Assembly (NCBI GenBank): GCA_030704615.1
Contig: CM060734.1
Span: forward strand, 7,316,001-7,380,000
Length of the DNA stretch: 64,000 nt
Source: Takakia lepidozioides
Lineage: Eukaryota > Plantae > Bryophyta
Reading direction: 5' to 3'
The position numbers were made by a program, and so were the translations under genes. The notes beneath the pieces were generated by a model that was not told where the DNA came from, made no database searches, and was given only the letters and a program-made list of their open reading frames with translations. Positions 7,790 to 34,835 of the stretch are shown here, in pieces (the first letter of the stretch is position 1; every line of letters starts with the position of its first letter).

Positions 7790-7794
7790 CAAAC

Positions 7795-12170: not shown

Positions 12171-12409
12171 TTATCATTCCTGACGTGACGTGGTGCTGAC
12201 ACGTCGGCCGTCACGTCACGTCGAATCCGGACGTTTACCCATGTAATTTTTTTTACATTTGACTTTTATGATTTACTTCTACCCTTTGTAATGACATGAC
12301 AGCCACGGTGTAAAACAGACGTGGCCAATTATTAATATTTATTAATTCTTTAAAAAAAAATGTGTCCGCTTATATTGGCGGTCACTAGTAATTTATTTAT
12401 TTTTAAATG

Positions 12410-12890
12410 AAGCGACCGCCCATATTGGCGGTCGCTTGTATTTTATTACATTTTAAAATAAGCGACCGCCTACATTGGCGGTCGGTTGAAGTTTATTATG
12501 TTTTAAATGAAGCGACCGCCCAGATTGGCAGTCGCTCGCACTTTATTATATTATTATTATTATATCTTTGATATATTCTGTAAAAATACAGCGACCGCCA
12601 TGTGGCGGTCGCTATATATATATTTTAAATTTAGCGACCGCCATTTAGCAGCGGTCGCTTATTTTTATTTTTATTCTTAAATAAAGCGACCGGTCGCTTA
12701 CTTAATATTTTTTTTTAAATGAAGCGACCGTCATTTAGCGGTGGTCGCTTATTTATATTTTGAATCTTGAATTAAGCGACCGCAAGTAGGCGGTCGCTTA
12801 TTTAATATATATATTTAAAAAGCAGCGACCGCTATGTGGCGGTCGCTCTTCTTGTTTTTATAAATATAGCGACCGCCATGCGGCGGTCGC
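12410..12890. repeat. Array of GCGACCGCC-N(3-6)-GGCGGTCGC hairpins with A/T-rich spacers
   Basis: About 10 units directly visible. Confidence 0.85.
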
Positions 12891-13299
12891 GTGTTTTTTT
12901 TTTTTTAGAAATCCAAGGACCCGCCGTGTGGCATTTTGTTTTTAATTTTTAATCATGAAGCGGCGCCTCAGCCAGCCACGTGGCGAGGTTGCCACGGGTC
13001 AAGAAAAACGAAACAAATGGGATGGGGGAGGTGGTTTTGAACCCTTGACTTCTCGCATGTGGGTGCGCGTGGCGAGGCGCCACTGGCCTGTCGCGCCTTT
13101 TCAAGCATAATGTCATTTTTTTATTTTTTTTTGGGGGGGCCTGGTGGGTGCCTATATAAACCATTCCCCCCTCATTTTCTGATCACTTTTGCCTATCTTG
13201 TGGTGCGGTTCCTTGGCATCCTGTAGTCCTTTCGGACTTCGTTGCTTGGCACTGCCAACGGGAGGTGCAAAGGTGATTATTTAGGGGGGGAGGTTTTGT

Positions 13300-14300
13300 C
13301 GGTTTTCTATTGGTCAGTCCCACACACTTGTTCACGGTACAATCATCGTATCACCATTTTGCCGTTTCCGGATCTCCGGCGGCCTGTTTAGCGGGCACTA
13401 TCAGGCTTGCAACGTGTCGCACGCATGTCGAACCATAGCGTGGATAGCATTTATGGCAACATGCAAAGGTATAACGATCTCCGCATCGCATCAAGCGTGT
13501 TCGCCAGATATACCAATTGGGCAGATGTGATCACTGGTCTCTTTCCGCCAATTGTTCCTCTAACGTTGCAGCCGGTTGTATTCCGAACGTATCCGTGATG
13601 TACTCCAAATCGTATAGCAACCTTGCATTCCTCCTACTAGCAGTTTGTCAATTCACTGGACGCAAGAGTATGACCTCCACGTACAACATGGCTGCCAAGG
13701 TGTACGGGATTTGACCCTTTAAGAGAGGTTGACCCCACAATGTGCAATGTATCTCATTCGCCCTATGCTGGAAATGCAAGTTCGTGCACGACCTAGACTC
13801 TGCGTAATTGTTTCGGGTTTGCACGTCATGCCTATCCAAAGGCCACAATCGATTGATGTGGTACAATTTCACGAATTTTTTGCATCTCGCCATTGGCCAC
13901 CGGAACTATTCTGGAACATTCTTCCAACCCTTTTCTGTTAGTATGCTAGGCTCACCATATACTTTCCAATTCAAGTCTTGCCTTGACCCTTTGATTTTCT
14001 TAGGGGGCGGTCCATGTTCATTGGGGTCATCTCTTCCATGACGATCATCGTCTTGGCCCTCTGCTATTCTGCAACAATCGAAGCAACACTACACGAGGTT
14101 TTCTAAAAAGACGTAACTCTAAACCCTTCCCCCGTTAAGTAGGTTTGAGTAGGTGTCAAAATAGTTCCTAAAAGCTAATTTTGTAGAATAAAATGATCCT
14201 GGAAGCCAGAGGAGGGCCTATGGGAGCATTCTGCAACGACCTCACAGAAATCGCGGCAAAAAATACCCCCTCACCCAACTAATGGCCTCCTTCTCCACGT
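13300..14300 (-). pseudogene. Unknown gene 'X', minus-strand copy
   Basis: ORF 13648-13893 contains GQIPYTLAAMLYVEVILLRPVN versus NSIPYTLAAMVYVEVVLHRRVDW in copy 1; a first-exon-like segment near 14250-14300 resembles 10340-10400; TATA-like GATATAAGCC near 14390 (-). Confidence 0.45.
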
Positions 14301-16775: not shown

Positions 16776-17626
16776 CGTTTATGGGAGGTTAGCTATTTCA
16801 TGAGCATGAGCGGCATGAGCGGAGTAGTAAGACAATCGGTTTTCATGAGCAGAAGTACAAATTCTGCAAATAAAAAACATTAAAAAACATTATTTTAATT
16901 AGATGTGTCAGAAAAAAAACAAAAAAAACAAAAAAAACAATATAATATTCTTTGTTTGAAGTAGAAATTGTAGTTTTGAGAGCCGTGCTCATGATATTTC
17001 GTCTTCCACTCATGCGAATTCCGAGTGACATCTGCAAAAATGGCGCCGAATTTTGCGGTAATAGGTTCCGCGAGCAGAAAAATCGGCGACGTATTGCGCA
17101 GTAATAGGTGTCTCCGGCGAAAAATGGTGCCAAATTTCGCGGTTATAGGTCCCAACTTCATTGAAGTGTAAGCCCAAAATTTGGAAATATGGCGCCGAAT
17201 TTCATGGTGCCGGACATTGCACAAATGTTGGGCAGTTCTGGGCCATGTAACTGGAAATTCGGCGCCATTTTTCCAGACATCGTTTCCAGACAATGTTAGG
17301 ACTTAGCCAGTTTTCGGCCCAAGAAAAGGTAATTCGGCTTCATTTTTCCAGAAATGCCCCCCTCAACTGCAATTGTTGGAACTCAGTTTTCTGGAAGATT
17401 TGCAAATTTTTTCTGCCGCCATCTTTGTATTGATTCTGTTTCGACATTGAATTGCCACTGGACGTCAACGGATATCCAACAGTCCCTAGTGTTTAAAAGA
17501 CATCACTTTAATATTGTCTGTCTCATTTCCAGGAGTTTTGGGGTGCAATTCATTACACTGCAAAACAAAGTCTAATGCATCAAAATGCAATTGCAAATAT
17601 CCATATGGTGGATTCCATTTTCCCCA

Positions 17627-20600
17627 TCAATGATTTCTGGAATCTCGGCCGAGGAGTTTGTGCAGCTCATTCACGCTCAACGCTGGTGCATGAATAAAGT
17701 CATCAATAGTCAACTTCATCCTCAACCTCTTCAGGTAAATGTAATACAGATGCTTGCACGGATAATACTTTGACCCCTTCTTTGCTTCCATCAACGAGAA
17801 GTCCGTACAATTGCAAGTCGGCTCCACTCCAATCGTAATTGTGTATACGTTGTCGCGTACAGCTGAGCCGGCCATTGCCATCCGATAAATACGCCCAAGG
17901 CTGGGTGGGGGTACGTCCACGGATCTTTGAATAGTGCAAGCCATCCAAAGAGCATTGGCATTCCGAGTCTCATTCAACTTGTTGGGATGGTGTCGTCTCT
18001 TCACTCTTCCGAATCGCATTGTGGGATGTGCAGAATTGTCCAATCCGTCTCTACTGGACCGAGCAGTCTGCAATGGCTGGGTCTGAGGAACTGGAAACGA
18101 GTGGGCCGAGACGTCTGTGCGTTGTACCATTTGAAATCCTGCTGCAGAAATAGCATCCGCCTCATTCTGAAAGAGGTTGCAACCCGGTGCAACAGGCCAG
18201 ACGCCCGGAGGCTCCGGCATTCCCTGAATCTCGTACTTGGGCTTGCCAAATACACAGGTCATTATGTCGTGCCTACAGAACCAAAACGTCTGTGTTGTGG
18301 CTTGAGAGAATGTGGGAGTCAAAAATTTGCCGTTGAAACAAGGTGCATGTACAGCACCGTGTGGGTTCCTCTGAATCATCTCACCATAGCGTGCTCTCGT
18401 ATCCACCCGGATGGCGCAGCACTTCCCTCGAAATGCCGGCAATGTCCTTGCAATTCTCCACTGTGACTCCGACACTCTTGTCTCCACAATGGGTATGTTG
18501 TACTACGGTACTACAGATGGCTCGTTATGTTCCTCGGGCACGTGCCCTGTCAAAGGAGATGGCGATCTTGAACGTGCAGGACTTGCGGTGCTCGATGAGA
18601 CCTCCTCGGGCAACATCACGGGACCACGAGGGAGGGTGCGAATATTCTTGTCAGCTCGCCATGAATCCTCTTCTCCGCCAGGTGCCTCGTCAAGTCTTCG
18701 TCTCACTGGATGGGTGTGAACACCTCCTTCCAAGTGTTGGCCTCTTCAAAGCAATGGCGTGTCCCGAAGGCCCTCTCGCAAGGCTGTCGCCTACTTGCAA
18801 GGATTTTTCGATCTGGAGGCAGTCCGCATCAGCATTTCCTGCCTGTCCGGCCCCAAGCCCTATTGTTTCCCTTTCAAGAACTCATTGTACATGCATTGCT
18901 CCATAATTGACCTGACAATGTCTTCTGTTGTGGCAGTGAGGATGTCCACCAGATGCACCGCAGAGGAGGCACGCCAGGAATAATGTACTGATTCGGCCAT
19001 GTTTGTTGTCGGCATGTCGGTGTCGGAGTCCAGACACATTTCCTGCACATGCACATGTTGAGGTTACAAGCAAGTTACAAATAACGAGTAGCATAATATT
19101 CAACGGGACGCAAATTCGTCCAACTCACCTCCCGCATATAGTCGCCGAACTGGAGGAAACGATAATGCCACCATGCTAGCCAACTGACCATTGTTCCCTC
19201 GTCTGATTTCTTTACAGCACCTGACGTTGTCCACCAAGCCCGTATACATGCAAATTGTGTCTCTGCATCATCCAAGGTGGGAGCACGCTTCCACGCAAGA
19301 CACATGGAACGGTGCTCCTATCTGAAATCTGGCGCCACGAGCCGGGTTGTGTATTGCGACAAGCTCTGAAGAAAATGGAACCCACAAGATCTCTCATTGC
19401 CTTCCATTGGAACATTGGGATCTTCCCCATACACCCTTCGGATGGCAGCCCAATTTGCTTGTGCGTTGTCCGCCATGAAACCACGGAAATTGGGAGGGGG
19501 CAATCCCGCCCTGGCCATCTGTTCGTTTATTCCCTGCCAAAGAAGCATCTCCGATTGTGTGTCCTCTCCTTTCATCTCACAAATAGCAATGGTCATTAGC
19601 ATCCTGCAGTGGGTGTCGTAGACATGTGCAGCCATTGTCACCCACTGGTGATTTGTAATTCGCTTGATATGGTCGAACATGACCCAACTGTTTGACAAGT
19701 CCCCACTCGTCATCCGGTCGACCAGTTCGACGCTGCTGCCAGGCCCACACGTAGACATTTTGAATACGAAACAACGATCTGCCTCAGTCCCTTGTCCAGG
19801 AAACCTACTTCCATGAATGTAGTCATATCCACATCGTCGCTTCACCTCCAGAATAGAGTGCATATCCGAGCCACGCCCAATTTTCTGTTTGCAGGAGACA
19901 ATGTGGTTTCGGACATTCGGTGAACAGACGTGGGACACTGACTCCAGCAATGCCTCCATTTCCTTCTCATCGAGAGGAACTCTATCGGAGCCGTCTTCCG
20001 ACATAATTCTGGCCAATGTCATCTTATGGGCGGCCTGCAGCTGTATCTGTTTGGGTTTGGCACCAGGTCTCAACCTAATCTCCTCCTGAACGAGCTGCTT
20101 TGCCTCGTGGGCAGCCTCCCGCGAGTTCCCCCTTGCCAATTTGTGACAATGGGAACCAACGTGTATGCAAGCTCATGTGAGGTTAGGGAAACGGTGCAAC
20201 ACATAGAACTGCTTGGCATTACAAACAAACATGCAATGTGGTGGTTCTTTGCAATGCGCACACTTAAATGTGGAGTTTGGAACCTTCTCCTGAGCTCGAA
20301 ATGGTTGATGAGCTGTGCCTGTCCAATCCTCTCGTTCCTGTGATCTCTGGATTTAAAGTGGAAGCAAGTTGGGGAGAAACACCGCACCGCGCCCGCACAA
20401 ACAACGTAGCGCACCCGCATATCATTGAGCATCTTCATGCTGGTGGTTTTGGTGACGCACCAAGGATGACCATCATGTTTCCTATCCATATCTGTCAACA
20501 TTCCGGACGCCCTCGAATAGTCCGTTCGAGGAGGGAACTCAAAGAACATATTACCGTCGACGTCTGCGGGAAGGCATGTAACGGATTTAATTGCGAACTT

Positions 20601-21230
20601 GCTATAGTCCAGCCCAGCCAGCTCCGAGCGGTGTCCCTCCATGTGAAGCCCTCGCAGAATTTCAAGAATGGATCGAACTGCTGTGTTCGTGCTGGGAATA
20701 TGACTCCTTCGTCCGCTGATGTCCATTGAGGACTTGCCTGATCTCCAAGATGATCTCGGAACTTCCATGACCTCGTCGGAGTCGGACAGGTTGTGAACAA
20801 CCCGGTTCTCGCTCGTCTTCATTGATGGGTTCGGCTCTGGATTTACTTCGTTGCGGACTTCTCTCTTTGAGGTACCCACTCTCCGATTCGCAGATTGTTT
20901 CGTGGAAGGCGCCAGGAGAGAAGGCGCAAGGATAGAAGGCGCATTTGGCGGGCAAATGAAGTCCCCAACAGCCCTGTATATGACGTTGTCCGATGGTGGA
21001 ACTCGCCATTCCCTGCCGTCGCCGAAATCATCGTAGAGCACAACAATACTTTCGACTACAACTCCGTTTGAATCCTTCTTTTCCTCCTCCAAAAATACCG
21101 ACCCCGGTTTCAGGTGGTATCAAACGCAGAGATATTTCTCCATCACCCAGCAGATCTCCCCTCTGCACGGAAATGTAGCTCTATGCTCGTGAGGAGGGCA
21201 GTACACTATAGCGCTCGGGTTTTCTGCCAT
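17627..21230 (-). pseudogene. MULE-type DDE transposase with N-terminal GCM/WRKY-like Zn domain and C-terminal SWIM finger
   Basis: DGHPW..TTS..C.G...C....C then C..C...P.C...C..H.G.H.H (about 20480-20150); catalytic-like MFD, FMADNAQANW, CGFHFLQ, W..WW..R and TTNMAESVH; SWIM CNCTDF..PCKHLYY. One intron at about 19127-19045. Stops at about 21120, 20178, 19320 and 18860 plus a frameshift near 20330. Confidence 0.85.
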
Positions 21231-21618
21231 GGGAGTTGTGCACACAAGACTGCCAGAGGCGTTCGGACAAGCGCCCTGGGAGAAGGGGGGAGGCAGCGAG
21301 GGGAAGCAATGCAAGGCCGATTTTTGGAAGCGATGAAGCCTATTCACGAATCCGGGGAGCCCACTCTCCCGAAAATCCACTGTCAGAGAGTTAATGAACC
21401 TTGTCTGCGGAATGCGGCCCCTGGCCTTTGCGCAATAACTGCCAACGGTATGCAGTCAGAAGGTATATGACCTGTGCAGATGCGCTGGGCAAACCAATCA
21501 TTACGACGTCTGACAAAAAGCGTGGGGGGGCGAGCGTGCAAGCACCATCCCCATGGACTGAGGGAACTGACAGAGGTGGCATTCCAGTGGGTCTGATTAC
21601 AAGATTGAGTGCCAGAAC

Positions 21619-24600
21619 CGGCGCCGAATTTCCATCCGAGGCCCGTTGGATGAAGTCGTCTTGGGGGGAGAGGCCGACACCTGGCCCACATGAAACATCC
21701 CCTGGATGGGAATTCGGCGCCGAATTTCCATCCGAGGCCCGTTGGATGAAGTCGTCTCGGGGGGAGAGGCCGACACCTGGCCCACAGAGAACATCCCCCG
21801 GAAGGAAATTCGGCGCCGAATTTCCATCCGAGGCCCGTTGGATGAAGTCGTCTCGGGGGGAGAGGCCGACACCTGGCCGACTGAGATCATCCCCCGGATG
21901 GAAATTCGGCGCCGTTTTTCCATCCAACCCGGCCGGATGAAGTCGAATCGGGGGGAGAGGCCGACACCTGGCCGACAGAGAACATCCCCCGGATTGACAT
22001 TCGGCGCCAAATTTCCATCCGAGGCCCGTTGGATGAAGTCGTCTCAGGGGAAGAGGCCGACACCTCGCCCACTGAGATCATCCCCCGGATGGAAATTCGG
22101 CCGAATTTCCATCTGAGGCCCGTTGGATGAAGTCGTCTAGGGGGGAGAGGCCGACACTTAGCCGACTGAGATCATCCCCCGGATGGAAATTCGGCGACGT
22201 TTTTCCATCCGACCTGGCCGGATGAAGTCGTCTCGGGGGGAGAGGCCGACACTTGGCCGACAAAGAACATCCCCCGGATGGAAATTCGGCACCGAATTTC
22301 CATCCGAGGCCCGTTGGATGAACTTGTCTCGGGGGGAGCGGCCGATACTTGGCCGACTGAGATCATCCCCCGGATGGAAATTCGGCGCCGTTTTTCCATA
22401 CTACCCGGCCGGAAGAAGTCGTCTCGGGGGGAGAGGCCGACACATGGCCGCCAGAGAATATCCTTCGGATGGAAAAACGGCGCTGAATTTCCAGCCGAGG
22501 CCCGTTGGATGAAGTCGTCTCGGGGGGAGAGGCCGACACCTGGCCGACAGAGATCATCCCCCAGATGGAAATTCGGCGCCGTTTTTCCATCCGACCCGGC
22601 CGGATGAAGTCGACTCGGGGGGAGAGGCCAACACCTGGCCGACAGAGAACATCCCCCGGATTGAAATTCGGCGCCAAATTTCCATCCGAGGCCCGTTGGA
22701 TGAAGTCGTCTCGGGGGAAGAGGCCGACACCTCGCCCACTGAGATCATCCCCCGGATGGAAATTCGGCGCCGAATTTCCATCTGAGGCCCGTTGGATGAA
22801 GTCGTCTCGGAGGTAGAGGCCGACACTTAGCCGACTGAGATCATCCCCCGGATGGAAATTCGGCGCTTTTTTTCCATCCGACCCGGCCGGATGAAGTCGT
22901 CTCGGGGGGAGAGGCCGACACTTGGCCGACAAAGAACATCCCCCGGATGGAAATTCGGCGCCGAATTTCCATCCAAGGCCCGTTGGATGAACTTGTCTCG
23001 GGGGGAGCGGCCGACACTTGGCCGACTGAGATCATCCCCCGGATGGAAATTCGGCGCCGTTTTTCCATACTACCCAGCCGGATGAAGTCGTCTCGGGTGG
23101 AGAGGCCGACACCTGGCCGACAGAGAACATCCCCCGGATGGAAATTCGGCACCAAATTTCCATCCGAGGCTCGATGGATGAAGTCGTCTCGGGGGGAGAG
23201 GCCGACACATGGCCGCTAGAGAATATCCTCTGGATGGAAAAACGGCGCCGAATTTCCAGCCGAGGCCTGTTGGATGAAGTCGTATCGGGGGGAGAGGCCG
23301 ACACCTAGCCGACTGAGATCATCCCCCGGATGGAAATTCGGCGCCGTTTTTCCATCCGACCCGGCCGTATGAAGTCACCTCGGGGGGAGAGGCCGACACC
23401 TGGCCGACAGAGAACATCCCCCGGATTGAAATTCGGCGCCAAATTTCCATCCGAGGCCCGTTGCATGAAGTCGTCTCGGGGGGAGAGGCCGACACCTGGC
23501 CAACTGAGATCATCCCTCGGATGGAAATTCGGCGCCGAATTTCCATCTGAGGCCTGTTGGATGAAGTCGTATCGGGGGGTGAGAATGACACCTGGCCGAC
23601 TGAGATCATCCCCCGGATGGAAATTCGGCGCCGTTTTTCCATCCGACCCGGCCGGATGAAGTCGTCTCAGGGGGAGAGGCCGACACCTGGCCGACAGAGA
23701 ACATCCCCCGGATTGCAATTTGGCGCCAAATTTCCATCCGAGCCCCGTTGGATGAAGTCGTCACGGGGGGAGAGGCCAACACCTGGCCCACAGAGAATAT
23801 CCCCCGGATGGAAATTTGGCGCCGAATTCCCATCCGAGGCCCGTTGGATGAAGTCGTCTCGGGGGGAAAGGCCGACACCTCGCCCACAGAGAACAACCCC
23901 CGGATGGAAATTCGGCGCCTTGGATGAAGTCGTCTCGGGGGGAGAGGCCGACACCTTGCCCACTGAGATCATCCCCCGAATAGAAATTCGGCGCCATTTT
24001 TCCATCCGACTCGGCCGGATGAAGTCGACTCGGGGGGAGAGGCCGACACCTGGCCGACAGAGAACATCCCCCGGATTGAAATTCGGCGCCAAATTTCCAT
24101 CCGAGGCCCGTTGGCTGAAGTCGTCTCGGGGGAAGAGGCCGACACCTCGCCCACTGAGATCATCCCCCGGATGGAAATTCGGCGCCGAATTTCCATCCGA
24201 GGCCCGTTGGATGAAGTCGTCTCGGGGGGAGTGGCCGACACTTAGCCGACTGAGATCATCCCCCGGATGGAAATTCGGCACCGTTTTTCCATCCGACCCG
24301 GCCGGATGAAGTCGTCTCAGGGGGAGAGGCCGACACCTGGCCGACAGAGAACATCCCCCGGATTGCAATTTGGCACCAAATTTCCATCCGAGGCCCGTTC
24401 GATGAAGTCGTCTCGAGAGGAGAGGCCGACACCTGGCCCACAGAGAATATTACCCGGATGGAAATTCGGCGCCGAATTTCCATCCGAGGCCCGTTGGATG
24501 AAGTCGTCTCGGGGGCAGCGGCCGACACTTGGCCGACTGAGATCAACCCCTGGATGGAAATTCGGCGTCAATTTTCCATCCGACCCGGCCGGATGAAGTC

Positions 24601-27050
24601 GTCTCGGGGGGAGAGGCCGACACCTGGCCGACAGCGAACATCCAGCGAATGGAAATTCGGCGCTGAATTTCCATCCGAGGCTCGTTGGATGAAGTCGTCT
24701 CGGGGGGAGAGGCCGACACATGGCCGCCAGAGAATATCCCCCGGATGGAAAAACGGCGCCGAATTTCCATCCGAGGCCCGTTGGATGAAGTCGTCTCGGG
24801 GGGAGCAGCCGAACCCCTGGATGGAAATTCGGCGTCGTTTTTCCATCCGACCCGGCCGGATGAAGTCGTCTCGGGGGGAGAGGCCGACACCTGGCCGACA
24901 GCGAACATCCCCCGAATGGAAATTCGGCGCCGATTTTCCATCCGAGACTCGTTGGATGAAGTCGTCTCGGGGGGAGAGGCCGACACATCGCCGCCAGAGA
25001 ATATCCCCCGGATGGAAAAACGGCGCCAAATTTCCATCCGAGGCCCGTTGGATGAAGTCATCTCGGGGGGAGAGGCCGACACCTGGCCGACTCAGTTCAT
25101 CCTCCGGATGGAAATCCGTTTTTCCATCCGACCCGGCCGGATGAAGTCGACTCGGGGGGAGAGGCCGACACCTGGCCGACAGAGAACATCCCCCAGATGG
25201 AAATTCGGCGCCGAATTTCCATCCTAGGCCCATTGGATGAAGTCGTCTCGGGGGGAGAGGCTGACACCTGGCCGACAGAGAACATCCCCGGATGGAAATT
25301 CGGCGCCGAATTTCCATCCGAGGCCCGTTGGATGAAGTCGTCTCGAGGGGAGAGGCCGACACCTGGCCGACAGAGAACATCCCCCGGATGGAAATTCGGC
25401 GCCGAATTTCCATCCGAGGCCCGTTGGATGAAGTCGTCTCGGCGGGAGAGGCCAACACCTGGCCGACTGAGATTATCCCCCGGATGGAAATTCGGCGCCG
25501 TTTTTCCATCCGACCCGGCCGGATGAAGTCGTCTCGGGGGGGAGAGGCCGACACCTGGCCGACAGAGAACATCCCCCGGATTGAAATTCGGCTTTGAATT
25601 TCCATCCGAGGCCCGTTGGATGAAGTCGTCTTGGGGCAGAGGCCGACACCTGGCCGACAGAGAACATCCTCCGGACGGAAATTCGGCGCCGAATTTCCAT
25701 CCGAGGCCCGTCGGATGAAGTCGTCTCGGGGGGAGAGGCCGACACCTAGCCGACAGAGAATATCCTCCGGATGGAAATTCGGCGTCGAATTTCCATCCGA
25801 GGCCCGTTGGATGAAGTCGTCTCGGGGGGAGAGGCCGACACCTGGCTGACTGAGATCATCCCCCGGATGGACATTCGGCGCCGTTTTTCCATCCGACCCG
25901 GCCGGATGAAGTCGTCTCGGGGGGAGAGGCCGACACCTGGCCGACAGAGAACATCCCCCGGATGAAAATTCGACACCAAATTTCCATCCGAGGCTCGATG
26001 GATGAAGTCGTCTCGGGGGGAGAGGCCGACACATGGCCGCCAGAGAATATCCCCCGGATGGAAAAACGGCGCCGAATTTCCAGCCGAGGCCCGTTGGATG
26101 AAGTCGTCTCGGGGGAGAGGCCGACACCGGGCCGAATGAGATCATCCCCCGGATGGAAATTCGGCGCCGTTTTTCCAACCGACCCGGCAGGATGAAGTCG
26201 TCTCGGGGGGAGAGGCCGACACCTGGCCGACTGAGAACATCCCCCGGATTGAAATTCGGCGCCAAATTTCCATCCGAGGCCCGTTGGATGAAGTCGTCTC
26301 GGGGGGAGAGGCCGACACCTGGCGGACAGAGAACATCCCCCGGATGGAAATTCGGCGCCAAATTTCCATCCGAGGCTCGATGGATGAAGTCGTCTCGGGG
26401 GGAGAGGCGGACACATGGCCGCCAGAGAATATCCTCCGGATGGAAAAACGGCGCCGAATTTCCAGCCGAGGCCCGTTGGATGAAGTCGTCTCGGGGGGAG
26501 AGGCCGACACCTGGCCGACTGAGATCATCCCCCGGATGGAAATTTGGCGCCGTTTTTCCATCCGACCCGGCCGGATGAAGTCGTCTCAGGGGGAGAGGCC
26601 GACACCTGGCCGACAGAGAACATCCCCCGGATTGCAATTTGGCGCCAAATTTCCATCTGAGGCCCGTTCGATGAAGTCGTCTCGGGGGGAGAGGCCGACA
26701 CCTGGCCGACTGAGATCATCCCCCGGATGGAAATCCATTTTTCCATCCGACCCGGCCGGATGTAGTCGACTCGGGGGGAGAGGCCGACACCTGGCCGATA
26801 GAGAACATCCCCCGGATGGAAATTCGGCGCCGAATTTCCATCCTAGGCCCGTTGGATGAAGTCGTCTCGGGGGGAGAGGCCGACACCTGGCCGACAGAGA
26901 ACATCCCCCGGATGGAAATTCGGCGCCGAATTTCCATCCGAGGCCCGTTGGATGAAGTCGTCTCGGGGGGAGAGGCCGACACCTGGCCGACAGAGAACAT
27001 CCCCGGATGGAAATTTGGTGCCGAATTTGCATCCGAGGCCCGTTGAATGA
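21619..27050. repeat. Tandem array of about 56 units of 95-96 bp, each with a 30-bp palindrome
   Basis: Unit GGATGGAAATTCGGCGCCGAATTTCCATCC-GAGGCCCGTTGGATGAAGTCGTCTCGGGGGGAGAGGCCGACACCTGGCCGACAGAGAACATCCCCC; a 95-bp variant (..CGTTTTTCCATCCGACCCGGCCGGATG..) is interspersed. Confidence 0.97.
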
Positions 27051-27189
27051 AGCCCGTATCGGCACTTCTTCAACAATTTTTAGTCGTTGCATCAAGTTTT
27101 TCGCGTTTTTTTGTCTGGTTACACACTAAACTTGGAGTTTTTTTGCCTACAGGCCACATTTGGCACGTTATTCCCACCATTCGGGTCCG

Positions 27190-27790
27190 CTAAAGACAAA
27201 TTCGTTGCCGGTTTTCCATCGATGAGGTGGACTGAATTACCTGCAGGATGGAAATTCGGCGCCGGTTTCCCATCCGGCTTCTCTCCGTGTTACCTGTGGG
27301 ATGGAAATTCGGCGCCGGATTTCCATCCGGCCGCGCTCCGAATTACCTCTGGGATGGAAATTCGGCGCCGGATTTGCATCCGGCCACGCTCCGAATTACC
27401 TACAGGATGGAAATTCGGTGCCGTTTTTCCATCCGGCCGCGCTCCGAATTACCTGGCGGATGGAAATTTGGCGCCGGATTTCCATCCGGCCGCGCTCCGA
27501 ATTACTTGGTGGATGGAAATTCGGCGCCGTTTTTCCATCCAGCCGCGCTCCAAATTGACTGGCGGATGGAAATTCGGCGCTGGATTTCCATTCGGCCGCG
27601 CTCCGAATTACCTCTGGGATGGAAATTCGGCACCGGATTTGGCCGCACTCCGAATTACCTGCAAGATGGAAATGCGGTGCCGGTTTTCCATCCGGCGTCT
27701 CCTGGATGAGAACGGCTCGGGCGGAGGGATGGCCTCGTTGCGTCATTCTTCATCCGCTGGATGGAAATTCGGCGCCGATTTTTTCCATCC
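27190..27790. repeat. 53-bp tandem array with the same palindromic core
   Basis: GGATGGAAATT starts recur at 27246, 27299, 27352, 27405, 27458, 27511, 27564 and 27617; spacer GGCCGCGCTCCGAATTACCT differs from the 96-bp array. Confidence 0.92.
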
Positions 27791-28859
27791 AGCAGGCGAT
27801 TGACGAAGTCTCGGGGGGAGGGTGGGCGCCTGTGACCGACCTCCATACCTACGACATTTAATGGCGCAGTTGGGCATTAAATGTCCTCTGCCGTCGATTT
27901 TGAACCGGGCTGGCGACACAGGGATTCCGCGCTCGCTTCCCGGATACGCCTTGGAAACCTGATGCTTAACTTGGATGAACTTCTATTCGAGGCATGTACG
28001 CACACATACTGTGAGATCTTTTTTCTTTTGCTGGGACTTATGCCGCGTGGAGAAGGGCGTGGCTCTCCTAAGAGAAACCCCACATCCAGACTGCGGCGGA
28101 AGCTGAAGGCTTTGTACTACGGGCGACGTCCAACCTCTCGCATGGCCAAACTTAAGCTCCAGCAGGAAATTCCATTGTCTTGCTCAGAGCCCGCGCTAAC
28201 TGAAGCCGAGCACTCTCAAGTTCCACCCCTTCCTCTTTCGGTTTTCTTCGTTTTTTGTTTTTGTTTTCGCATCTTCCGTCTGGCAGTCCTGGAAGCGCAT
28301 GGTTGCATCGCAAAAGCACGAGTTGTTGAGAAGAATGATTAAGGTCAGAATGGTTAGAAAGGAGCCAGGTCGTTGCTGCATTCAGATTTGCAACAGGGTG
28401 CACACCTCGCTGTAGATAACAGGTTGCATCTCGGAATTAAGGAAATCCATGCTGAACTGAGAAGATTGTCTGAGCAGATGAAGTGCCTTCAAAACATTTG
28501 ACCCTGTTTTCCCGTCTCATGGAATTCGTGTTTCATGTTGATTTCTGCAAGATACTGGTTTAGTGAACCTTAGATAGTTTGCAATGCATGTGCAAAGCCG
28601 ACAGCTCTGGAGAAGGCTGCTTGTGCATGTCATTCTTAGGCATTGTTTGGATTTGTTTTTCATTGTTGTTCCATGCCACTCCATACTTGGTTTTGTTTTG
28701 TTTTCATTGTTGTTCCACGATTGTTGCGATGGTGGTTGCGCTGCTCGTTGCGATGGTGGTTTTCATTCCGATGTTGGTTCTCACGATTTTTGGGGATGAC
28801 AGAGTGACGACGAGCCCGACACGCTAGTGGTATCATCGACAGCTCCAACTGCTCGAGCA

Positions 28860-31800
28860 ATGACTCCAAAAGCCGCTACTCATCGCATGTTTGGATCTCA
28901 ACTTGGGGCGGGAGGGCAAACTAAAACCTTTGTTGGTGGACGGAAGGACCTGCAGCGAGAGTACGACAGAATAGGCATTGGGGAGGTTGGTGCAGGCGGC
29001 ATGGCAGGTGAAGGGCGTCGGATGAGGACAGCAAATCCGGTAATGGAAGATGTTCATGCACATGCAGTAGGGCCAGCCCACGCAAAGAAGAAGAAGAAAG
29101 CCAAGCACATGCAATCCCCGGCGAGAGAGCCGTCACGGGCTGCGGAGGGGGGAGTGAGCAGGGCGCGCGAGGGTGTCAGTTCGCCTCAATCAAAGGTGGT
29201 CGTCCTGGAGGCCTCCCCTGCTGCTACCCCTAGTAAGAAACAGAAGGCCCGTGAGAGGGCAAAAGAGAGGGCAAAAGAACAGGTGAGACAGAAGGCTAGC
29301 CAGGAGGCAAGAGAAAAGGCCACTGAAGAGGCCAGGGGTGTCGAAATGACAGATGCCCATGTAAGCGAGGGATGCACGGAGATGGTGGATCCCTCCAAGA
29401 CACCACAAAGAGGCAGTAACACACCGGTTACACCATCGCGGGCAGGAGCAGCCCCCGCAATTACCCATACGGTGGAAACTGGAGGAGGTGAAAGAACACC
29501 ACAAAGAACACGGATTGTGCAAGTTCGAGGTGAAGCCGGGGAGAGGGCAGTAGAGACGGAGAGAGTGCTCCAGGTGCTTCCGTCGGAGGATGACCATGTT
29601 GAGGATGACGAGAGGGAGCTTTCTGACTAGGATGACATCCTCCCGGAGATCCCCAGGCCCCAAACCCGGAGCATACAGGCTGGATTTGGTGGTCCAGGTG
29701 GGCTGCCGGAGAACCCCTCTACAGCAGAAGTCATGTCGGAGGTGGATATGAAGTTGGCCGCTGCCAAGATGTTGGAGGAAACCCACAGCAACATTGGCAG
29801 GGTCCTGGGGGGCATGGTGTACCTGGCCAAGCTTCGGATTCCCCTTTGCCGCTTGGTTTCATTGCAGGTGGTGAGACCTGCCCTCCCAGGCGATATCGAC
29901 AAGCTAAAATTCTCTTTCCGGGAGGGATATCGAATGGGGTCTGCCGCATTTTATGTTTCCATGGAGAACGACCACGGAGCTTCTCGTGCCCACACTTCCG
30001 ATGAGGTGGACAAATGGGGTCCCCATTGGCAAAGGCGAAATGAGGAGTTCGAGAGATTGATTGCTACTGATCCTCTTTTCCAGCACTTGTCTGGAAAGAT
30101 GTTTTATGTGTGGGACGGCAATCATCGCCTCATGGCATGGATGGAGTACATAGCCCAAGCCCACCCCAACGACCTGGATTGGCATTTCGCCGTGGAGTGT
30201 GTTGTGCTCAAGGTTGCGGGGCCCAAAGATCGCAGTCTTCTCAAAGCGGCAATGGCAGACATCAACTCGTAAGTTACAATGCTTCTTGCTTTGGAACTTT
30301 GAATTTGAAACAGTCATTTCATTGCCAATCGTCATATTTGTTGTAAATTCTCAATTCTGTATTGTTTAATGGAAATGTGGCATTGCAGGGTGACTGAGAA
30401 TGCCTTCATTGCCACCAACTTGTCCCATATGCTCTTCCGAGTGAAGGATGTCGGGAAGCAGGGGGTGCTAGAGTTTGCCAATTCGCTTAGTGCCGACCTC
30501 TTGCGCAAGTCGGAGGCAAGGGCAGACAGAACCTGGTATAGGCTAAGCATGGACGCCATGGTGGACTACATATTTCGGGTAAAGCTCCTCACTGTTTTGT
30601 TGAGCTAATCTGTCTCTCCTCCCCCAATAGAAGAAAAAGTGTTGAGCAGGATCTCTAATCTTATGTGCGCATTCTTGACAGACGAAAATTCAGCAGGATT
30701 TGGCACATGCGCGGAGGTTCTACATGGAGTCAGAGGAGAAGAAACTAACCCTCCCGGCACTGGAATCGTATCTCAAAGTTGCGGAGGTGAAGGCCCGCAT
30801 CAAGTACAAGTCGCGGATGGTAAAGTACGTGGCCATAGCTGATCCCGCCCTTGGTGCCGATTTTCTAGTGGAGGTGGGGAAGCACTACTCCCGCGCTCTG
30901 AAGCCCACGATGACATTGGAGAAGCTGCATCGTCTAGCCACATCCTGTGTGGATGCAACAGAAAAGGTTATACATTCTTAACCAAATTGTCGTGGCAGCA
31001 ATTCGTTTTTGTGGTGTTTGGCGCTTACTAATATGCTGGGTGGTTGGACAGACCCGGTGGCTCCAAATCTGGAATGGTTCCCAAAGTACAAGGGACATGT
31101 GGAGCTTCCCCAAACCCGACAAACTGCCTGACCCCACATTCGACATGTGGATGAACCGCATGACATGGTGGTTTCAGGTACTTTCCCACGCTTCATTTGG
31201 CGCTTCTACGCTTGTATCGGATGGATTTATTGTATTTTTTGAGGAAAGCGGTCTGATGGAGAATTTCCACAAGTGACGACGAATGCGCAAGAGCAGCTTG
31301 ATACACAAGCACATCAGTTCAAGCTGGAGATTTCTGGTGAAACAGAGAGCCTACGCGACTATGTGACGAGGTACTTTCTGCTCTACAAAACCGACCTATT
31401 CTTTCGAGAGATACCCCATGCCCGCCGGAGCCACGAGTTCACCGACCAGCCGAACGCGGACAAAGCGGCAATGCGCCTTCTGTACAGGTACATACGCTGT
31501 GCCTTTCTTTTTAGTCCCAACATTTCCAGGATGTAAGAGGCCTTATGTGGCGCATGAAAATTAGTTGTGGTCCTAGGAAAAATGGCGCCGAATTTCCGAA
31601 TTCGGGACCTGGGGGATGGCTGTCCAGGGGGTGGCTGGCACTCAATCCGGAAATTCGGCGCCATTTTTCCAGTTGCAAGCCCAGTCAGATCTGGGACTTA
31701 GCCATTCTCGGCCCCAACCTGGGAAAATGGCGCCGAATATCCAGTGCAGGGCCCCGAAAATGGCTAAGTCCCTATAGTGGCAGGCACCGAAACCGGAAAT

Positions 31801-34594
31801 TCGGCGCCATTTTTCTAGTTCCGGGCCCAGTCAGTTCTGGGACTTACCATTTTCGGGCCCAAACTGCGAAAATGGCGCCGAATATCCAGTGCAGGGCCCC
31901 GAAAATGGCTAAGTCCCTAGTGTGGCAGGCACCGAAATTGGAAATTCGGCGCCATTTTTCCAGTTCCGGGCCCAGTCAGTTGTGGGGCTTATCCATTTTC
32001 GGCCCCAATATGGGAAAATGGCGCCAAATTTCCAGTTGAGGGCCCCGAAAATGGCCAAGTCCCTGGGGTGGCTGGCACCGAAACTGGAAATTCGGCGCCA
32101 TTTTTCCAGTTCCAGGCCTAGTCATTTTCATTCCCTAAAATTTACCTCGTTCCCGGGACCTCATTCTGTGTGTTTCTTGAATGCAGGTACTGTAAGTTCT
32201 CCCTTTTGGAGAAAAGACATCTGTCCTTCGAGCCGCCATTCTTCCTCGCATGGAGGAACCCTGGGGCTGACTCCATGTACACTGACGTTATCGTGAAGGA
32301 GTGGCATTTGGAACATTTGCGCGACTGCCCTTGGTATGTGGACCTTCCGCCCGGCTTGCTCGACCCATCCGAGTTTCAATTGAAGCTGGATGCTGAGGCT
32401 CGACGAAACTGGGCTCCGCTGTCTCCGCTGGGTCCAAAGGAGGCGAGAGCGCTTGCCCAGTCCAGGAAAGCGGCAGAGCTTGCTCAGGCAGGTATTCAAG
32501 AGAAAAGGCTGTCTTTAGGGCATTCCAATCAGCAAAGCTGCCATGAGGTTGACGATCATACCAATGAATGAGAAGAATAAAGGACAAAAGAAAAGGACAC
32601 GGAAACAGGGGAGTACAGTAACCCCCAAAAAACAGAAAACCACCGGGGCACCAGAGGAGGCGCAGGCCCCAAGGGAGTGACTCCGACGACGACTTTGTGC
32701 AAGGTCCTGCGACTGCTACTGCTGGTACCAAGTCATCGGTTGTCCGGGTTCCCAAGTCAGTTCGGACTGGGACTGGCTCTGCCAAGAAGTTGGCATTTGA
32801 GGGCGAGCCTACACGGCGGTATTCGGCGGTGATGTTTCCGAAGAGGCCAAAGCTAAAACCCCCAACCATCATCCAATGTGTCAATGAGAGCTTCCTTGAC
32901 GCTCTGGCTGCCAGGGCGAAGAAGGTGGCACACAGCAAGTCTGTGGAGGAGCAGAAGGGGAAAGCCAAGAAGAGGGCTCCTAGTACAGAGCCTAAAGACA
33001 CCCCTGGTTTCGAATCCATGATGGAATTCTTCACGGTTGTGAGCACGGATTGCAAGAGCACTCGGGGGGGGGGGGGGGGGGTGAGGTGGAGAGAGCCTGC
33101 GATATGATTCTCCTCGATATTCCAGATGGGGAGCTGCTGGAGGGCGTGGATGGTGTGCCCACCTGGAACAGGTTTACTGAGGACTACTGGAGAGCCGGGT
33201 TTGGGCTGGCGGGGATGCTCCTGGATGACGGTGGATGTATGGTGGTCCTTGCCACAAGAGGGAAGACCACAGACAATGTTGTGGCAAGGTGGACACCAAA
33301 AAGTGTCACCCCGGTCCTCCTCAAAAAATAGTTCTGCATCAATACGCAAGGGTTGCGAACAGAGGGCCAGAGTGTAAGTTATCAATCTATTGCATTCACT
33401 TCATATTGTGGTGTATCTGAACTAGACCCTGGAGTTGATCCCTCTTTTGTTGGATGTGCAGACATTGGTGTTTGAGGCATATTGTTTTGTGAAGAGAGGG
33501 TCTACGTTCAAATTCCGCAACGACGGTCGTCTTGTTGATGCCGTTGTGGACCCTGTTACCTACGATGTCCTCTACAACTATGTGCCCCACTCCAGTATGC
33601 CGAAGGACACAAAGATAGGCAAACCATGGCGGTACAGCCGGACCCGGAGCCCTGCTTTCATCCAAACCCTCATGGAGACGTGCTCGGATGTCCAAGGGCA
33701 GATTCTTGACCTCACATGCGGCACGGGTAAGCCTTCACGTGCACATTTTGTCCCCTGGCTCGATTGCAATTGCATGCCGCATGCTACTAACCGCCCGCTT
33801 TGTCCCTCAGGTGCTTCAATGTGGGCAGGGACGTTGTCCGACAGGCATGTCTTCGCCTTCGAGCCAGATACTGCCCTCCACAACTCCGAACTTGCAGCGG
33901 CTGAACGTCTGCCGAAAGAGGAAGAGGCATCCTCGGAGGATGAGGAAGAATCCGACAAGGAGCAGGGGGAGGTACAAGTTGGGATCGAGGCCGAGGAGCC
34001 CCCGGTTTACGAGTGAGTGGTCGCATTGTAGGTTGCCTCCTGATTTCGTGAGGCACCTCCCTTTGCTCTCTTATTTCATTGAAAGACCCTTTTTTGCTTC
34101 TACTGATATTGACATTCTTAAAGTGGATTTGTTCTTACTGCAGGATGCCAAGTACTACAGGAGGGACGTCTACACCGCAATTCATGGGCAGGAAGAACGT
34201 GCTTTTTTTTGCCAGGGGGGATTTCATGGCTAGTCCAGAAAGGGACTACATCCTTCCTACTTATGCTGCCCGGCTTGCTTCGGTGTCCATTATGAGGTCT
34301 TCCGAACCTAGTCGTGTACAGCAGATTTTAGACGAGGCAAGCCTCAAGAAAAGGGAGGAGGCAGCAGCTATTAGAGCCCGTCAGGCTCGTAGATTTGTCT
34401 TGGATTCTGCTGAGGAAAGTGGGGGAGAGGAGGCAAAAGATTCCCAGGAGGTGAGGTGGACAGTCCCCCAAGGAGAGGACAGAATTTTTGAGAGGCATAG
34501 TGGAACTGATGCATCACAGAGCTCGGAGGATGGGGGGGATGAGGGGGATGAGGAGGAAGGCGGGGCAAGTTCCTCGGAGGGTGTAGGAGAGTAG
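28860..34594 (+). pseudogene. Multi-exon ParB/Srx-like domain plus beta-class amino (N4C/N6A) DNA methyltransferase-like protein
   Basis: Basic low-complexity N-terminus; ParB-like LQVVRP..DIDKLK.SF.EGY..FYVWDGNHRLMAW (DGNHR at 30114-30128); motif-IV-like DMILLDIPDG (33101-33130) then LLDDGGCMVV; RSPAFIQTLMETCS..GQILDLTCGTG(intron)ASMWAG....RHVFAFEPD (SAM-binding, from 33702). GT-AG introns at about 30269-30388, 30579-30696, 30967-31051, 31488-32187, 33728-33810 and 34015-34143. Stops at 29628 and 33329, plus frameshifts. Start codon uncertain. Confidence 0.75.
31575..32110. repeat. Intronic array (about 146-bp period) of GGAAATTCGGCGCCATTTT motifs in alternating orientation
   Basis: Eight motif copies about 73 bp apart, alternately reverse and forward, inside the long intron; similar copies at 17037-17350 near the left TIR. 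Confidence 0.85.
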
Positions 34595-34835
34595 TGCCCA
34601 TTCCGGCTATGACAGTTATGACACACTTGTATAGATGTGGCTTGCCACAAAATTTGCAATAAAATGTTGCATTTCATTGCTATGACGAGTCCACTGGTGC
34701 CAAATTCCAACTTGATATGACCCTATTTCGGTGCCTCCTAACCCTATTTCCGTGGACACACAATGGTCCGCTCATGTTTTTTTTTTTTTCCACTCATGCT
34801 CATGCCGCTCATGAAATAGCAACCCCCGTTTATGG

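Follow-up and report, generated by a model that had tools for sequence, protein, structure and literature searches.

A probable Mutator-like giant transposon of Takakia lepidozioides with palindrome arrays and a ParB-methyltransferase-like accessory gene

Introduction

Transposon accessory genes combining a ParB-like domain with a DNA methyltransferase (MTase) domain, accompanied by inverted-repeat arrays, were reported in 2025 from brown, red and green algae, the green algae being cited by the Ectocarpus paper (PMC12477816). That paper describes the accessory protein of Ectocarpus Sola1-1_Ec32 as a 1,104-aa polypeptide with ParB-like and N4C/N6A DNA methyltransferase domains (PMC12477816). 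The red-algal accessory genes PAG2 and PAG3 of Plavaka, Mutator and Zisupton elements were described by Petroll et al. 2025 (10.1101/2025.02.11.637652), according to whom PAG genes pass from one transposon superfamily to another, Mutator elements of Chondrus among them. The authors of the algal studies propose self-binding and self-modification (PMC12477816; 10.1101/2025.02.11.637652). Outside eukaryotes, fusions of ParB-N (PF02195) with N6_N4_Mtase (PF01555) and ParB-Tls loci are known from prokaryotes and phages (Iyer et al., PMC4738411), and one phage ParB homologue, which has no DNA-binding domain, switches on a DNA-modifying enzyme specifically when the substrate is dsDNA (PMC13229309).

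The locus described here is an 18-kb element in a 64-kb stretch of Takakia lepidozioides DNA, which is called the window below. Compared by description, it fits the algal account: ParB-like and amino-MTase domains encoded in a giant transposon, opposite the transposase, with inverted-repeat arrays. Like the Takakia element, Sola1-1_Ec32 is a giant DNA transposon (21.5 kb) that encodes, on the strand opposite the transposase, a single long protein whose N-terminus is ParB-like and which also has a DNA amino-MTase domain. It is a brown-algal Sola1 element, whereas the Takakia carrier is Mutator-like and its host a land plant, and the passage describing the Ectocarpus protein mentions no palindrome arrays. 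The red-algal PAG2 and PAG3 carriers are likewise giant DNA transposons (17–19 kb) with a PF01555 MTase and a ParB-like N-domain; the best PDB match of the latter, 7BNR, is shared with Takakia exon 1, and inverted-repeat tandem arrays adjoin the ParB-like gene in both. In red algae, however, the domains lie on separate proteins (MTase+SET and ParB+2OG-oxygenase) and a third gene, PAG1, is present, whereas in Takakia ParB and MTase are fused and no SET or oxygenase domain was found. The preliminary description of this DNA stated that no description of such an architecture was known; this does not hold, as ParB-like plus N4C/N6A MTase accessory proteins, with arrays of inverted repeats beside them, had already been published for giant DNA transposons of Ectocarpus (PMC12477816) and red algae (10.1101/2025.02.11.637652).

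The prokaryotic fusions share with the plant proteins the domain pair and its order, a ParB N-domain followed by a beta-class MTase in which motif IV precedes motif I, and also occur on mobile elements. They keep DPPY and are recognised by Pfam, whereas the plant proteins have D-x-P-x-G, are 3–4 times longer with a middle region of ~500 aa, and are intron-rich; descent of the plant fusion from a prokaryotic ParB-MTase is plausible, with similarity to bacterial or phage MTases extending over only ~55–65 residues. The ParB activator associated with phage 5mYOX resembles the Takakia protein in having a ParB N-domain without an evident DNA-binding domain, but it is a separate polypeptide with a dioxygenase partner, and neither a transposon nor a palindrome array is involved. 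VANC, of the Arabidopsis MULE VANDAL, is an accessory protein proposed or shown to recognise short repeated motifs in its own element in a family-specific way and to bring about epigenetic change; it shares neither sequence nor fold with the Takakia protein, lacks ParB and MTase domains and causes loss of 5mC. The analogy is one of role alone. To our knowledge, nobody has shown the function of the ParB+MTase accessory genes of algal transposons.

The overall explanation that we favour, with fair though far from complete confidence, is that the element belongs to a Mutator-like (MULE) lineage whose accessory fusion protein acts on the lineage's own arrays, and that the accessory gene of this particular copy has been inactivated.

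Structure of the element and its transposase

The element comprises the following end features and transposase gene (window coordinates).

16776–16784 (no strand): left target-site duplication CGTTTATGG, identical to 34827–34835
16785–16822 (+): left terminal inverted repeat, made up of GAGGTTAGCTATTTCATGAGC and then short repeats of the CATGAGC type
17627–21119 (−): multi-exon transposase gene with six conserved open blocks (17630–21119)
34790–34826 (−): right terminal inverted repeat
34827–34835 (no strand): right target-site duplication CGTTTATGG, identical to the left copy

The unit measures 18,042 bp (16785–34826 of the Takakia lepidozioides window) and carries a perfect 9-bp target-site duplication (TSD) on both flanks. 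Its right end, read as the reverse complement, starts GGGGTTGCTATTTCATGAGC and its left end GAGGTTAGCTATTTCATGAGC; the terminal inverted repeats (TIRs) pair over 21–22 nt with one mismatch and one indel, followed by similar CATGAGC repeats. Exact matches to the 14-mer GCTATTTCATGAGC were found only at the two ends of the element, and with up to two mismatches there were 4 matches in the 64 kb, where 0.34 were expected. Inside lie the multi-exon transposase on the minus strand and a spliced accessory gene on the plus strand, with ~6 kb of 96- and 53-bp repeats between them. Both the 18,042-bp unit with TIRs and a perfect TSD and the two divergent spliced genes parted by ~6 kb of palindromic repeats had been proposed in the preliminary description, and the coordinates, both TSD copies, the paired ends and the layout were all found as claimed. 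The element is a structurally complete copy that was inserted cleanly.

The translated transposase blocks contain D..D(FMAD)..CGFH..TNMAESVH, and we take their D..D..CxxH..N-x-x-E-S pattern to be the MURA-type DDE signature. A SWIM-like CxCx..CxH finger pattern is present at the C-terminus, where many MULEs have a SWIM-type zinc finger; the SWIM profile PF04434 matched with E=0.004 and 17 bits, below its cut-off of 19.6. No match to the MULE profile PF10551 was obtained at E≤0.1–1 with the transposase blocks of the window or five homologues, and the nearest language-model clusters of the transposase all carry PF10551 (score 0.90, to be read as a lead). Enumeration of GT/GC-AG introns gave no exact splice sites for this gene. 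Members of the Mutator/MULE superfamily have terminal inverted repeats and a TSD of 8–11 bp, typically 9. The earlier assignment to the Mutator type is supported by the 9-bp TSD, the TIRs, the D..D..CxxH..E motifs and the SWIM-like finger, and as part of the overall explanation the element probably belongs to a deep-branching MULE lineage of land plants.

The accessory gene

The second gene and its lesions were mapped as follows.

28827–29630 (+): K/E/A-rich open frame that shares the reading frame of the ParB exon, with the TAG at 29628–29630 lying between the two
29733–30268 (+): exon 1, ParB/Srx N-terminal domain with the WDGNHRL motif
30389–30578, 30682–30966, 31052–31177 and 31273–31484 (+): exons 2–5, middle region
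31485–32183 (+): intron 5, 699 nt, GT..AG (joint 31484>32184), hosting a 146-bp array
32184–34013 (+): exons 6–10, linker and MTase-like domain
32506–32567 (+): 62-nt stretch where other copies have 4 nt; frame change with a stop at 32569–32571
33064–33081 (+): run of 18 G shifting the frame; other copies are 7–8 nt shorter there
33329–33331 (+): in-frame TAG in exon 8; all other aligned copies have G at 33330 (TGG, Trp)

The GT..AG joints 31484>32184, 33373>33462, 33725>33810 and 34027>34144 were observed in RNA-like contigs (the 'RNA' label of runs X8 and X9 being a guess by the tool), including those of introns 33374–33461 and 33726–33809, while DNA-like contigs read straight through the same introns. 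The fusion reading frame is unbroken through exons 1–6 (557 aa), and the read-through of the gene, its lesions written as X, aligns collinearly with Riccia sorocarpa proteins of 1,104–1,244 aa (E 1e-27 and 1e-10). Because an RNA-like joint links the halves, the frame is continuous and the Riccia proteins are collinear, the second gene is a single ParB-MTase-like fusion. Two separate genes had been suspected from the convergence of the ParB and MTase parts in a diverged copy at 55–61 kb, and were ruled out on these same three grounds. The K/E/A-rich frame upstream may be an N-terminal low-complexity region like that of the Riccia proteins. Across the family, the accessory protein probably has ~950–1,250 aa and consists of a ParB/Srx-type nucleotide-binding N-domain, a middle region and a divergent, SAM-dependent beta-class amino-MTase-like domain.

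In the 18-kb copy, the accessory gene is a pseudogene, with the TAG stop, the poly-G frameshift and the indel; enumeration of GT/GC-AG introns found none that restores the frame at the poly-G run. Intron 4 of this copy ends in AA, not AG. The pseudogene state had been missed in the preliminary description.

A model of exon 1 has the ParB/Srx N-domain fold (pLDDT 91). The best 50 Foldseek matches of this model were all ParB, Noc, KorB, PadC, Srx or SbnI, and it superimposes on the ParB N-domain of 7bnr with Z 8.9 and an rmsd of 2.2 Å over 89 residues, upholding the ParB-like identity proposed earlier. In the WDGNHRL motif, which answers to the phosphate-binding G-x-H/R-R of this superfamily, residues G129, N130, H131 and R132 vary little or not at all across 44 sequences. 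Searches of Pfam, NCBIfam and PDB sequences with the ParB exon of the window gave no match; its only weak profile matches were to a PHROG ParB-like family (E=0.02) and to DndB, the latter in 2 of the 44 ParB-like members (E 0.066). An eL24 match, obtained when a profile of the 44 ParB-like domains was compared with the PDB, was rejected as spurious. In canonical partition ParB, a CTP clamp that binds parS, the N-domain is followed by an HTH and a C-terminal dimerisation domain, and the partner is ParA. Here the structural matches cover the N-domain alone (chain residues ~37–127), profile searches found no HTH or other DNA-binding domain in the middle region, and searches with that region gave no lead.

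For the C-terminal domain, the window's own MTase exons had no Pfam, NCBIfam or PDB sequence match; the domain calls rest on fold, homologue profiles and alignment. PF01555 matched Riccia homologues with E 9e-6 to 5e-5 (23.7–26.2 bits, against a cut-off of 26.7) and is precomputed on four paralogues; a PHROG DNA methyltransferase family matched with E 4e-9. All these matches are limited to the C-terminal ~55–65 residues, the SAM-binding end, and the window exons align onto the same motifs as the Riccia homologues. The order is permuted: LDIPDG (motif IV-like, within 33074–33328) lies upstream of FIQTLMETCSDVQGQILDLTCGTG (SAM-binding, FxGxG-like motif I, LDLTCGTG, within 33462–33725), the corresponding Riccia motif I region is FVQTLLENFTAQGDIVIDFAGGWGAT, and the motif X-I region aligns with the DpnA and CcrM motifs. 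The best fold matches of the domain model were CcrM, M.BceJIV, M1.HpyAVI, M.MboIIA and rotifer N4CMT; the model is poor (pLDDT 50, from a 16-row alignment), and these matches are supportive at most. Taken together, the C-terminus is best described as a putative divergent PF01555-type (beta-class) amino-MTase-like domain, and the fold of exon 1, the homologue profiles and the motif alignment agree with the earlier reading of the gene as a ParB plus amino-MTase-like fusion.

In every member examined, the catalytic (D/N/S)PP(Y/F/W) is replaced by D-[LIMFV]-P-x-G, with DLPTG, DMPSG, DIPDG, DFPIG and DVPFG among the variants in the liverwort, fern and Takakia genomes, so amino-methyl transfer may be lost or altered. 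This replacement in all three kinds of genome, together with profile matches that cover the SAM-binding end alone, agrees with a catalytically dead domain, for which METTL14 (EPPL) offers a known example of a non-catalytic MTase fold; the protein would then be a non-enzymatic SAM-sensing or DNA-clamping co-factor in anti-silencing or transposition, with a role like that of VANC or MURB. Yet motif I is intact, some members have an aromatic residue at position 4 (DVPFG), and the Asp, the second Pro and the following Gly have persisted through very deep divergence, a sign of constraint on an active-site loop. We regard complete loss of catalysis as a serious alternative, albeit one that falls short of probable.

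Palindrome arrays and a possible mechanism

The palindromic repeats of the element were mapped as follows.

17036–17274 (no strand): six palindrome half-sites (GGCGCCGAATTT / AAATTCGGCGCC) clustered in the left subterminal region, in part forming a 43-bp tandem repeat
21619–27052 (no strand): 96-bp tandem array of ~56 units, in which sets of three units form a 287-bp higher-order repeat
27234–27696 (no strand): 53-bp tandem array of 8.8 units, with the same palindrome core as the 96-bp array
31631–32124 (no strand): 146-bp array with nine palindrome half-sites, inside intron 5 of the accessory gene

The central repeats are centred on GGAAATTCGGCGCCGAATTTCC, and each 96-bp unit holds the 30-bp palindrome GGATGGAAATTCGGCGCCGAATTTCCATCC. 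The palindrome is 92% conserved among these units, whereas their remaining sequence is 73% conserved, and its 22-bp form, with up to 3 mismatches, has 61 matches against 0 expected. Within the element, the sites are confined to the left subterminal region, the central arrays and intron 5. Changes in the palindrome are symmetrical, examples being TTCGGCGCCGAA to TGCGGCGCCGCA and CCGGCG/CCAGCG variants in Riccia.

Under the explanation that we favour, each subfamily has its own palindrome, whose tandem arrays occupy the upstream region common to both genes, and the accessory protein would be made from the element and act on the element's own DNA, binding or methylating its arrays. The phage ParB homologue mentioned above (PMC13229309) and the proposals made for the algal elements (PMC12477816; 10.1101/2025.02.11.637652) are precedents for such a mechanism. 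The palindromes could serve as dimer-binding or loading sites, the ParB-type domain could help to engage double-stranded DNA, and the MTase-like domain could mark it at N6-adenine or N4-cytosine or, should catalysis be lost, shield it or recruit other factors; either way, silencing or transposition of the element would be tuned. As the gene is inactivated in the 18-kb copy, any such function would have to be supplied in trans by intact relatives, and such relatives appear to be transcribed and spliced, judging from the RNA-like contigs.

The arrays might instead be enhancers or binding sites of the transposase, or of host transcription factors that drive the bidirectional promoter, working like the subterminal repeats of En/Spm or MuDR, with the ParB-MTase-like protein acting elsewhere or non-specifically. 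Many DNA-transposon transposases bind subterminal repeats, and half-sites do lie beside the TIR in the left subterminal region (17042–17266), the central arrays sit exactly between the two divergent genes, and at Riccia locus L001 a second palindrome type (GTCCAGCGGA..TCCGCTGGAC) is found near both element ends. However, no palindrome sites were found in the right subterminal 800 bp, a further array lies inside an intron of the accessory gene, 56 copies far exceed the usual need of a promoter or transposase, and the red-algal arrays track the ParB-like gene across transposon superfamilies (10.1101/2025.02.11.637652). This use of the arrays is unlikely in our estimate.

A more specific form of self-recognition, in which an ancient MULE lineage of at least liverworts, ferns and the Takakia genome encodes a fusion that loads on subfamily-specific palindromes and writes 6mA/4mC or shields the element, with palindrome and protein co-evolving as the symmetrical changes suggest, is put forward tentatively and would be somewhat surprising if correct in every part.

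Copies, relatives and origin of the accessory gene

Two further stretches of the window hold related sequence.

49284–51648 (+): sister-subfamily remnant with a C-terminal transposase fragment and the right end ...GCTCATGAAATAGTAAACCTCC
52583–60512 (no strand): decayed sister-subfamily pieces, with transposase at 52583–54721 (+) and a TIR at 55876–55897 (+)

The remnant has its transposase fragment at 49284–50724 and a variant palindrome, GGAAATGCGGCGCCGCATTTCC, at 51004. TIR-like ends GGAGGTTTACTATTTCATGAGC occur at 51627–51648 (−) and 55876–55897 (+). The decayed pieces include an MTase part at 55908–58003 (+), with LDIPDG and stops, and a ParB part at 60512–58362 (−), with VWDGNHRLL and frameshifts, which converge rather than being collinear. 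The diverged copies with the same genes and similar TIRs that the preliminary description placed at 49–61 kb are present, but rearranged and decayed.

Beyond the window, Riccia locus L001 has a transposase at 5832–7632 (−), eight palindromes at 8506–9246 and an accessory gene at 10001–13843 (+), and the same head-to-head layout is found at Riccia locus L004 and in an environmental eukaryotic contig (L002), in which tandem repeats are present and no clear repeated palindrome was seen. Ends and a TSD were sought for the Riccia element and none was resolved. The two Riccia subfamilies, of 42–100% identity, carry the same transposase type. The family is multicopy: there are 499 cluster representatives, at least 24 long Riccia paralogues and many 90–99% identical contigs in sequencing runs of Takakia lepidozioides, and word-indexed protein searches matched solely Riccia paralogues or unnamed metagenome proteins. 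The Adiantum gene model of one relative spans 125 kb.

Because the layout of transposase, repeats and ParB-MTase gene recurs in two Riccia subfamilies and the environmental contig, the accessory gene is, by comparison of these loci, a conserved lineage component and no one-off capture, as the preliminary description had held in calling it a fixed family component. MULEs often capture host gene fragments, and 2 of the 4 sampled Riccia loci carry the gene with no transposase within 10 kb. A single, hitch-hiking Pack-MULE capture of a host gene is nevertheless very improbable and was rejected, as a full-length intron-bearing gene stands head-to-head with the same transposase type in Takakia, both Riccia subfamilies and the environmental contig, and all named matches are multicopy, with a single-copy host orthologue in 0 of the 499 representatives.

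Significance

The architecture exists and is ancient within land plants, and the Takakia/Riccia lineage extends the algal kind to Mutator-like land-plant elements. With many copies, spliced RNA-like relatives, large and cleanly defined arrays and a conserved non-canonical catalytic motif, the family offers concrete testable material. It bears on the persistence of giant transposons, on whether a transposon recognises or protects itself, and on the dispute over whether plants have non-5mC DNA methylation and where it came from. If the proposed activity is true, land plants would have their first known site-directed DNA amino-methylation system encoded by a transposon.

Element boundaries and transposase

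The two ends of the 18-kb element are directly flanked by the 9-bp target-site duplication CGTTTATGG. The left end reads GAGGTTAGCTATTTCATGAGC and the right end, in reverse complement, GGGGTTGCTATTTCATGAGC, with similar CATGAGC-type repeats following at both ends; the target-site duplication and terminal inverted repeats (TIRs) of the preliminary description are thus borne out. Within the window, the 14-mer GCTATTTCATGAGC matches exactly at these two ends only, and allowing up to two mismatches yields four matches (0.34 expected), the remaining two of which, at 51.6 and 55.9 kb, belong to the sister subfamily, the decayed and diverged copies at 49-61 kb. Between the ends, the transposase blocks and the spliced accessory gene were found on opposite strands with palindrome arrays between them, in agreement with the divergent gene pair described earlier.

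Features of the element and of a neighboring retrotransposon region
16776-16784 and 34827-34835: target-site duplication, directly outside both element ends
16785-34826: element, 18,042 bp
17630-21119, minus strand: transposase, six conserved open blocks
21619-27052: 96-bp tandem array, about 56 units with a 287-bp higher order, between the two genes
27234-27696: 53-bp array, between the two genes
29733-30268, 30389-30578, 30682-30966, 31052-31177, 31273-31484, and 32184-32505, plus strand: accessory gene exons
31631-32124: 146-bp palindrome array, inside the 699-nt intron 5 of the accessory gene
40994-42112, plus strand: Gag, zinc knuckle, and aspartyl protease
42157-43176, plus strand: reverse transcriptase (RT)
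45601-45948, plus strand: C5 cytosine DNA methylase fragment (PF00145, E 1.6e-8)
46762-48852, plus strand: second RT stretch and RNase H

The transposase blocks share 61-70% amino acid identity with two other fragments in the window and 31-36% with Riccia sorocarpa loci and an environmental contig (E down to 1e-46). The Pfam search did not recognize a MULE domain in these blocks or in five homologues; a SWIM finger matched slightly below threshold (E 0.004), and the nearest language-model clusters all have the MULE family PF10551, which serves as a lead only. Read directly, the blocks contain WVMFD, FMAD with CGFH 27 residues on, TNMAESVH, and CNC...CKH, a series that follows the D-D-[C/D]xxH-E plus SWIM pattern of MULE transposases. 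Because this pattern occurs together with a 9-bp target-site duplication, the element was filed as a putative Mutator-like member of a very divergent lineage.

Outside the element, the plus-strand coding blocks at 40994-48852 are those of LTR retrotransposons, and their two RT stretches imply either a nested pair or a single element with a DNA methylase insert. On the plus strand at 5123-5782, upstream of the element, lies an open block with a match to the polygalacturonases (glycosyl hydrolase family 28, E 6e-27); it is likely an exon of a host gene.

The accessory gene is a spliced fusion of ParB-like and MTase-like parts

Joining the six exons (29733-32505) gives an uninterrupted 557-aa frame. 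Contigs from four runs of the same organism, two of them RNA-like (a guessed label), were compared with 28800-34700. The RNA-like runs contain the joints 31177>31273, 31484>32184, 33373>33462, 33725>33810, and 34027>34144, the last four all GT..AG, and contigs of the other two runs continue unspliced through the introns. A 941-aa read-through, with X placed at three breaks, aligns collinearly to Riccia proteins 1,104-1,244 aa long (E 1e-27 to 1e-9), its residues 35-510 matching Riccia 113-661 and residues 686-916 matching 848-1154. The accessory gene is a single spliced fusion, ParB-like plus MTase-like.

An exhaustive HMMER search with exon 1 returned 499 cluster representatives at E<=1e-3, the named ones being from R. 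sorocarpa and two Adiantum ferns and the rest from unnamed metagenome or read-assembly contigs. The fold predicted for exon 1 from a 44-row alignment has a pLDDT of 91, and all of its best 50 Foldseek matches fall in the ParB/Srx superfamily, which upholds the ParB-like assignment. Re-alignment with the CTP-binding N-domain of Myxococcus ParB gave Z 8.9 and an rmsd of 2.2 Å over 89 residues. In these structural matches the resemblance is limited to the N-domain, and no HTH was found in the ParB-like protein. Among 44 relatives a G-N-H-R motif is close to invariant.

For the other half, Riccia homologues matched PF01555 (N6_N4_Mtase) slightly below cut-off (E 9e-6 to 5e-5), a PHROG DNA methyltransferase (E 4e-9), and, weakly, DpnA and CcrM; their MTase blocks also align with the window's exons. 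The best fold matches of a weak model were CcrM, M.BceJIV, M1.HpyAVI, M.MboIIA, and a rotifer N4C MTase. The motifs come in beta-class order, with motif I retained (LDLTCGTG). The DPPY position reads LDLPTG and LDMPSG in Riccia, IDFPIG and FDVPFG in Adiantum, and LDIPDG in both window subfamilies; since catalytic DPPY is replaced throughout, methyltransferase activity is putative only.

The accessory gene of the 18-kb copy is dead. It carries a TAG at 33329-33331 (all other copies read TGG, with G at 33330), a frameshifting 18-G run at 33064-33081 where other copies are 7-8 nt shorter, and a 62-nt stretch (32506-32567) in place of 4 nt that leads to a stop. No intron repairing the frameshift of the 18-G run was found. 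That run could be an assembly homopolymer error, which does not explain the TAG. Possible further lesions are an intron 4 ending in AA, a TAG at 29628-29630 upstream of the ParB exon, and a TGA at 34014.

Palindromes and the sister subfamily

The 22-bp palindrome GGAAATTCGGCGCCGAATTTCC, at up to three mismatches, has 61 matches in the window against 0 expected. Over 53 units, conservation is 92% at the 30 palindrome positions versus 73% in the rest of the unit, a gap somewhat inflated by indel drift. Half-sites occur in three places only: left subterminal (17042-17266), the central arrays, and 31584-32100. The sister subfamily has a symmetric variant, GGAAATGCGGCGCCGCATTTCC, at 51004-51025, in which TTCGGCGCCGAA has become TGCGGCGCCGCA on both sides, so palindromic symmetry is retained. 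Apart from a common core of CGGCG or CAGCG, the palindromes are subfamily-specific. A weaker half-site lies nearby at 51153.

Copies of both genes had been reported at 49-61 kb. Transposase fragments and accessory-gene halves are indeed present, but the 55-61 kb copy is rearranged, as its ParB and MTase halves converge. At 55876-58003, a sister-subfamily TIR (GGAGGTTTACTATTTCATGAGC) lies about 30 bp or less from where the MTase half begins, a region homologous to the sequence from 32158 onward; the arrangement resembles an internal-deletion derivative without transposase, arrays, and ParB half.

The accessory gene belongs to the transposon lineage

The proposal that the second gene is a family component held in three further loci sharing the layout of transposase and accessory gene. 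In Riccia locus L001, the transposase (5832-7632, minus strand) and accessory gene (10001-13843, plus strand) are separated by eight ATTCCGGCGAGnCTCGCCGGAAT copies at 8506-9246 (0 expected). L004, a 42%-identical paralogue, has a transposase at 4722-7801 (minus strand) and AGCCGGCGG palindromes at 9090 and 9408. The environmental eukaryotic contig L002, in which no clear palindrome was found, has the gene order of L001 and a tandem repeat. Two other Riccia loci with the accessory gene lack a transposase within 10 kb. Riccia encodes at least 24 long paralogues of the accessory protein, and the accessory gene belongs to the transposon lineage.

Another kind of palindrome, GTCCAGCGGA..TCCGCTGGAC, occurs in L001 at 2498, 4253, 14351, and 15076, near both presumed ends; it differs from the TTCCGGCGAG palindrome at the center, between the genes. 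The Riccia element may have two classes of site, possibly serving two proteins. UniRef names on Riccia transposon proteins (P0165, P0166, P0163, and others) include several 'Trimethylguanosine synthase' and one 'Profilin' or 'peroxidase', which appear to reflect automatic naming errors and chimeric gene models across transposon copies.

Relation to known transposon accessory systems

The structural reading of the element was right and the observation is confirmed; its architecture had also been called undescribed, which does not hold, as algal transposons with ParB-like or MTase accessory proteins are already published. A 21.5-kb Sola1 element of Ectocarpus encodes a 1,104-aa protein, ParB-like plus N4C/N6A MTase, whose gene and the transposase lie on opposite strands (PMC12477816). 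Giant Plavaka elements of Bostrychia encode a PF01555 plus SET protein and a ParB-like plus 2OG-oxygenase protein (best match 7BNR), the gene for the latter adjoining inverted-repeat tandem arrays, and Bostrychia accessory genes also occur in Mutator and Zisupton elements (10.1101/2025.02.11.637652). ParB-linked adenine MTases have been listed in chlorophytes and chytrids (Iyer et al., PMC4738411), and a ParB homologue from phage that lacks a DNA-binding domain activates a DNA dioxygenase on dsDNA (PMC13229309). In the literature covered, an incomplete set, no description of such elements from bryophytes or ferns turned up. The element is a land-plant, Mutator-borne new member of these recently recognized transposon accessory systems, represented here by a copy with a decayed accessory gene. 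In the best working model the accessory protein would bind and mark its own element.
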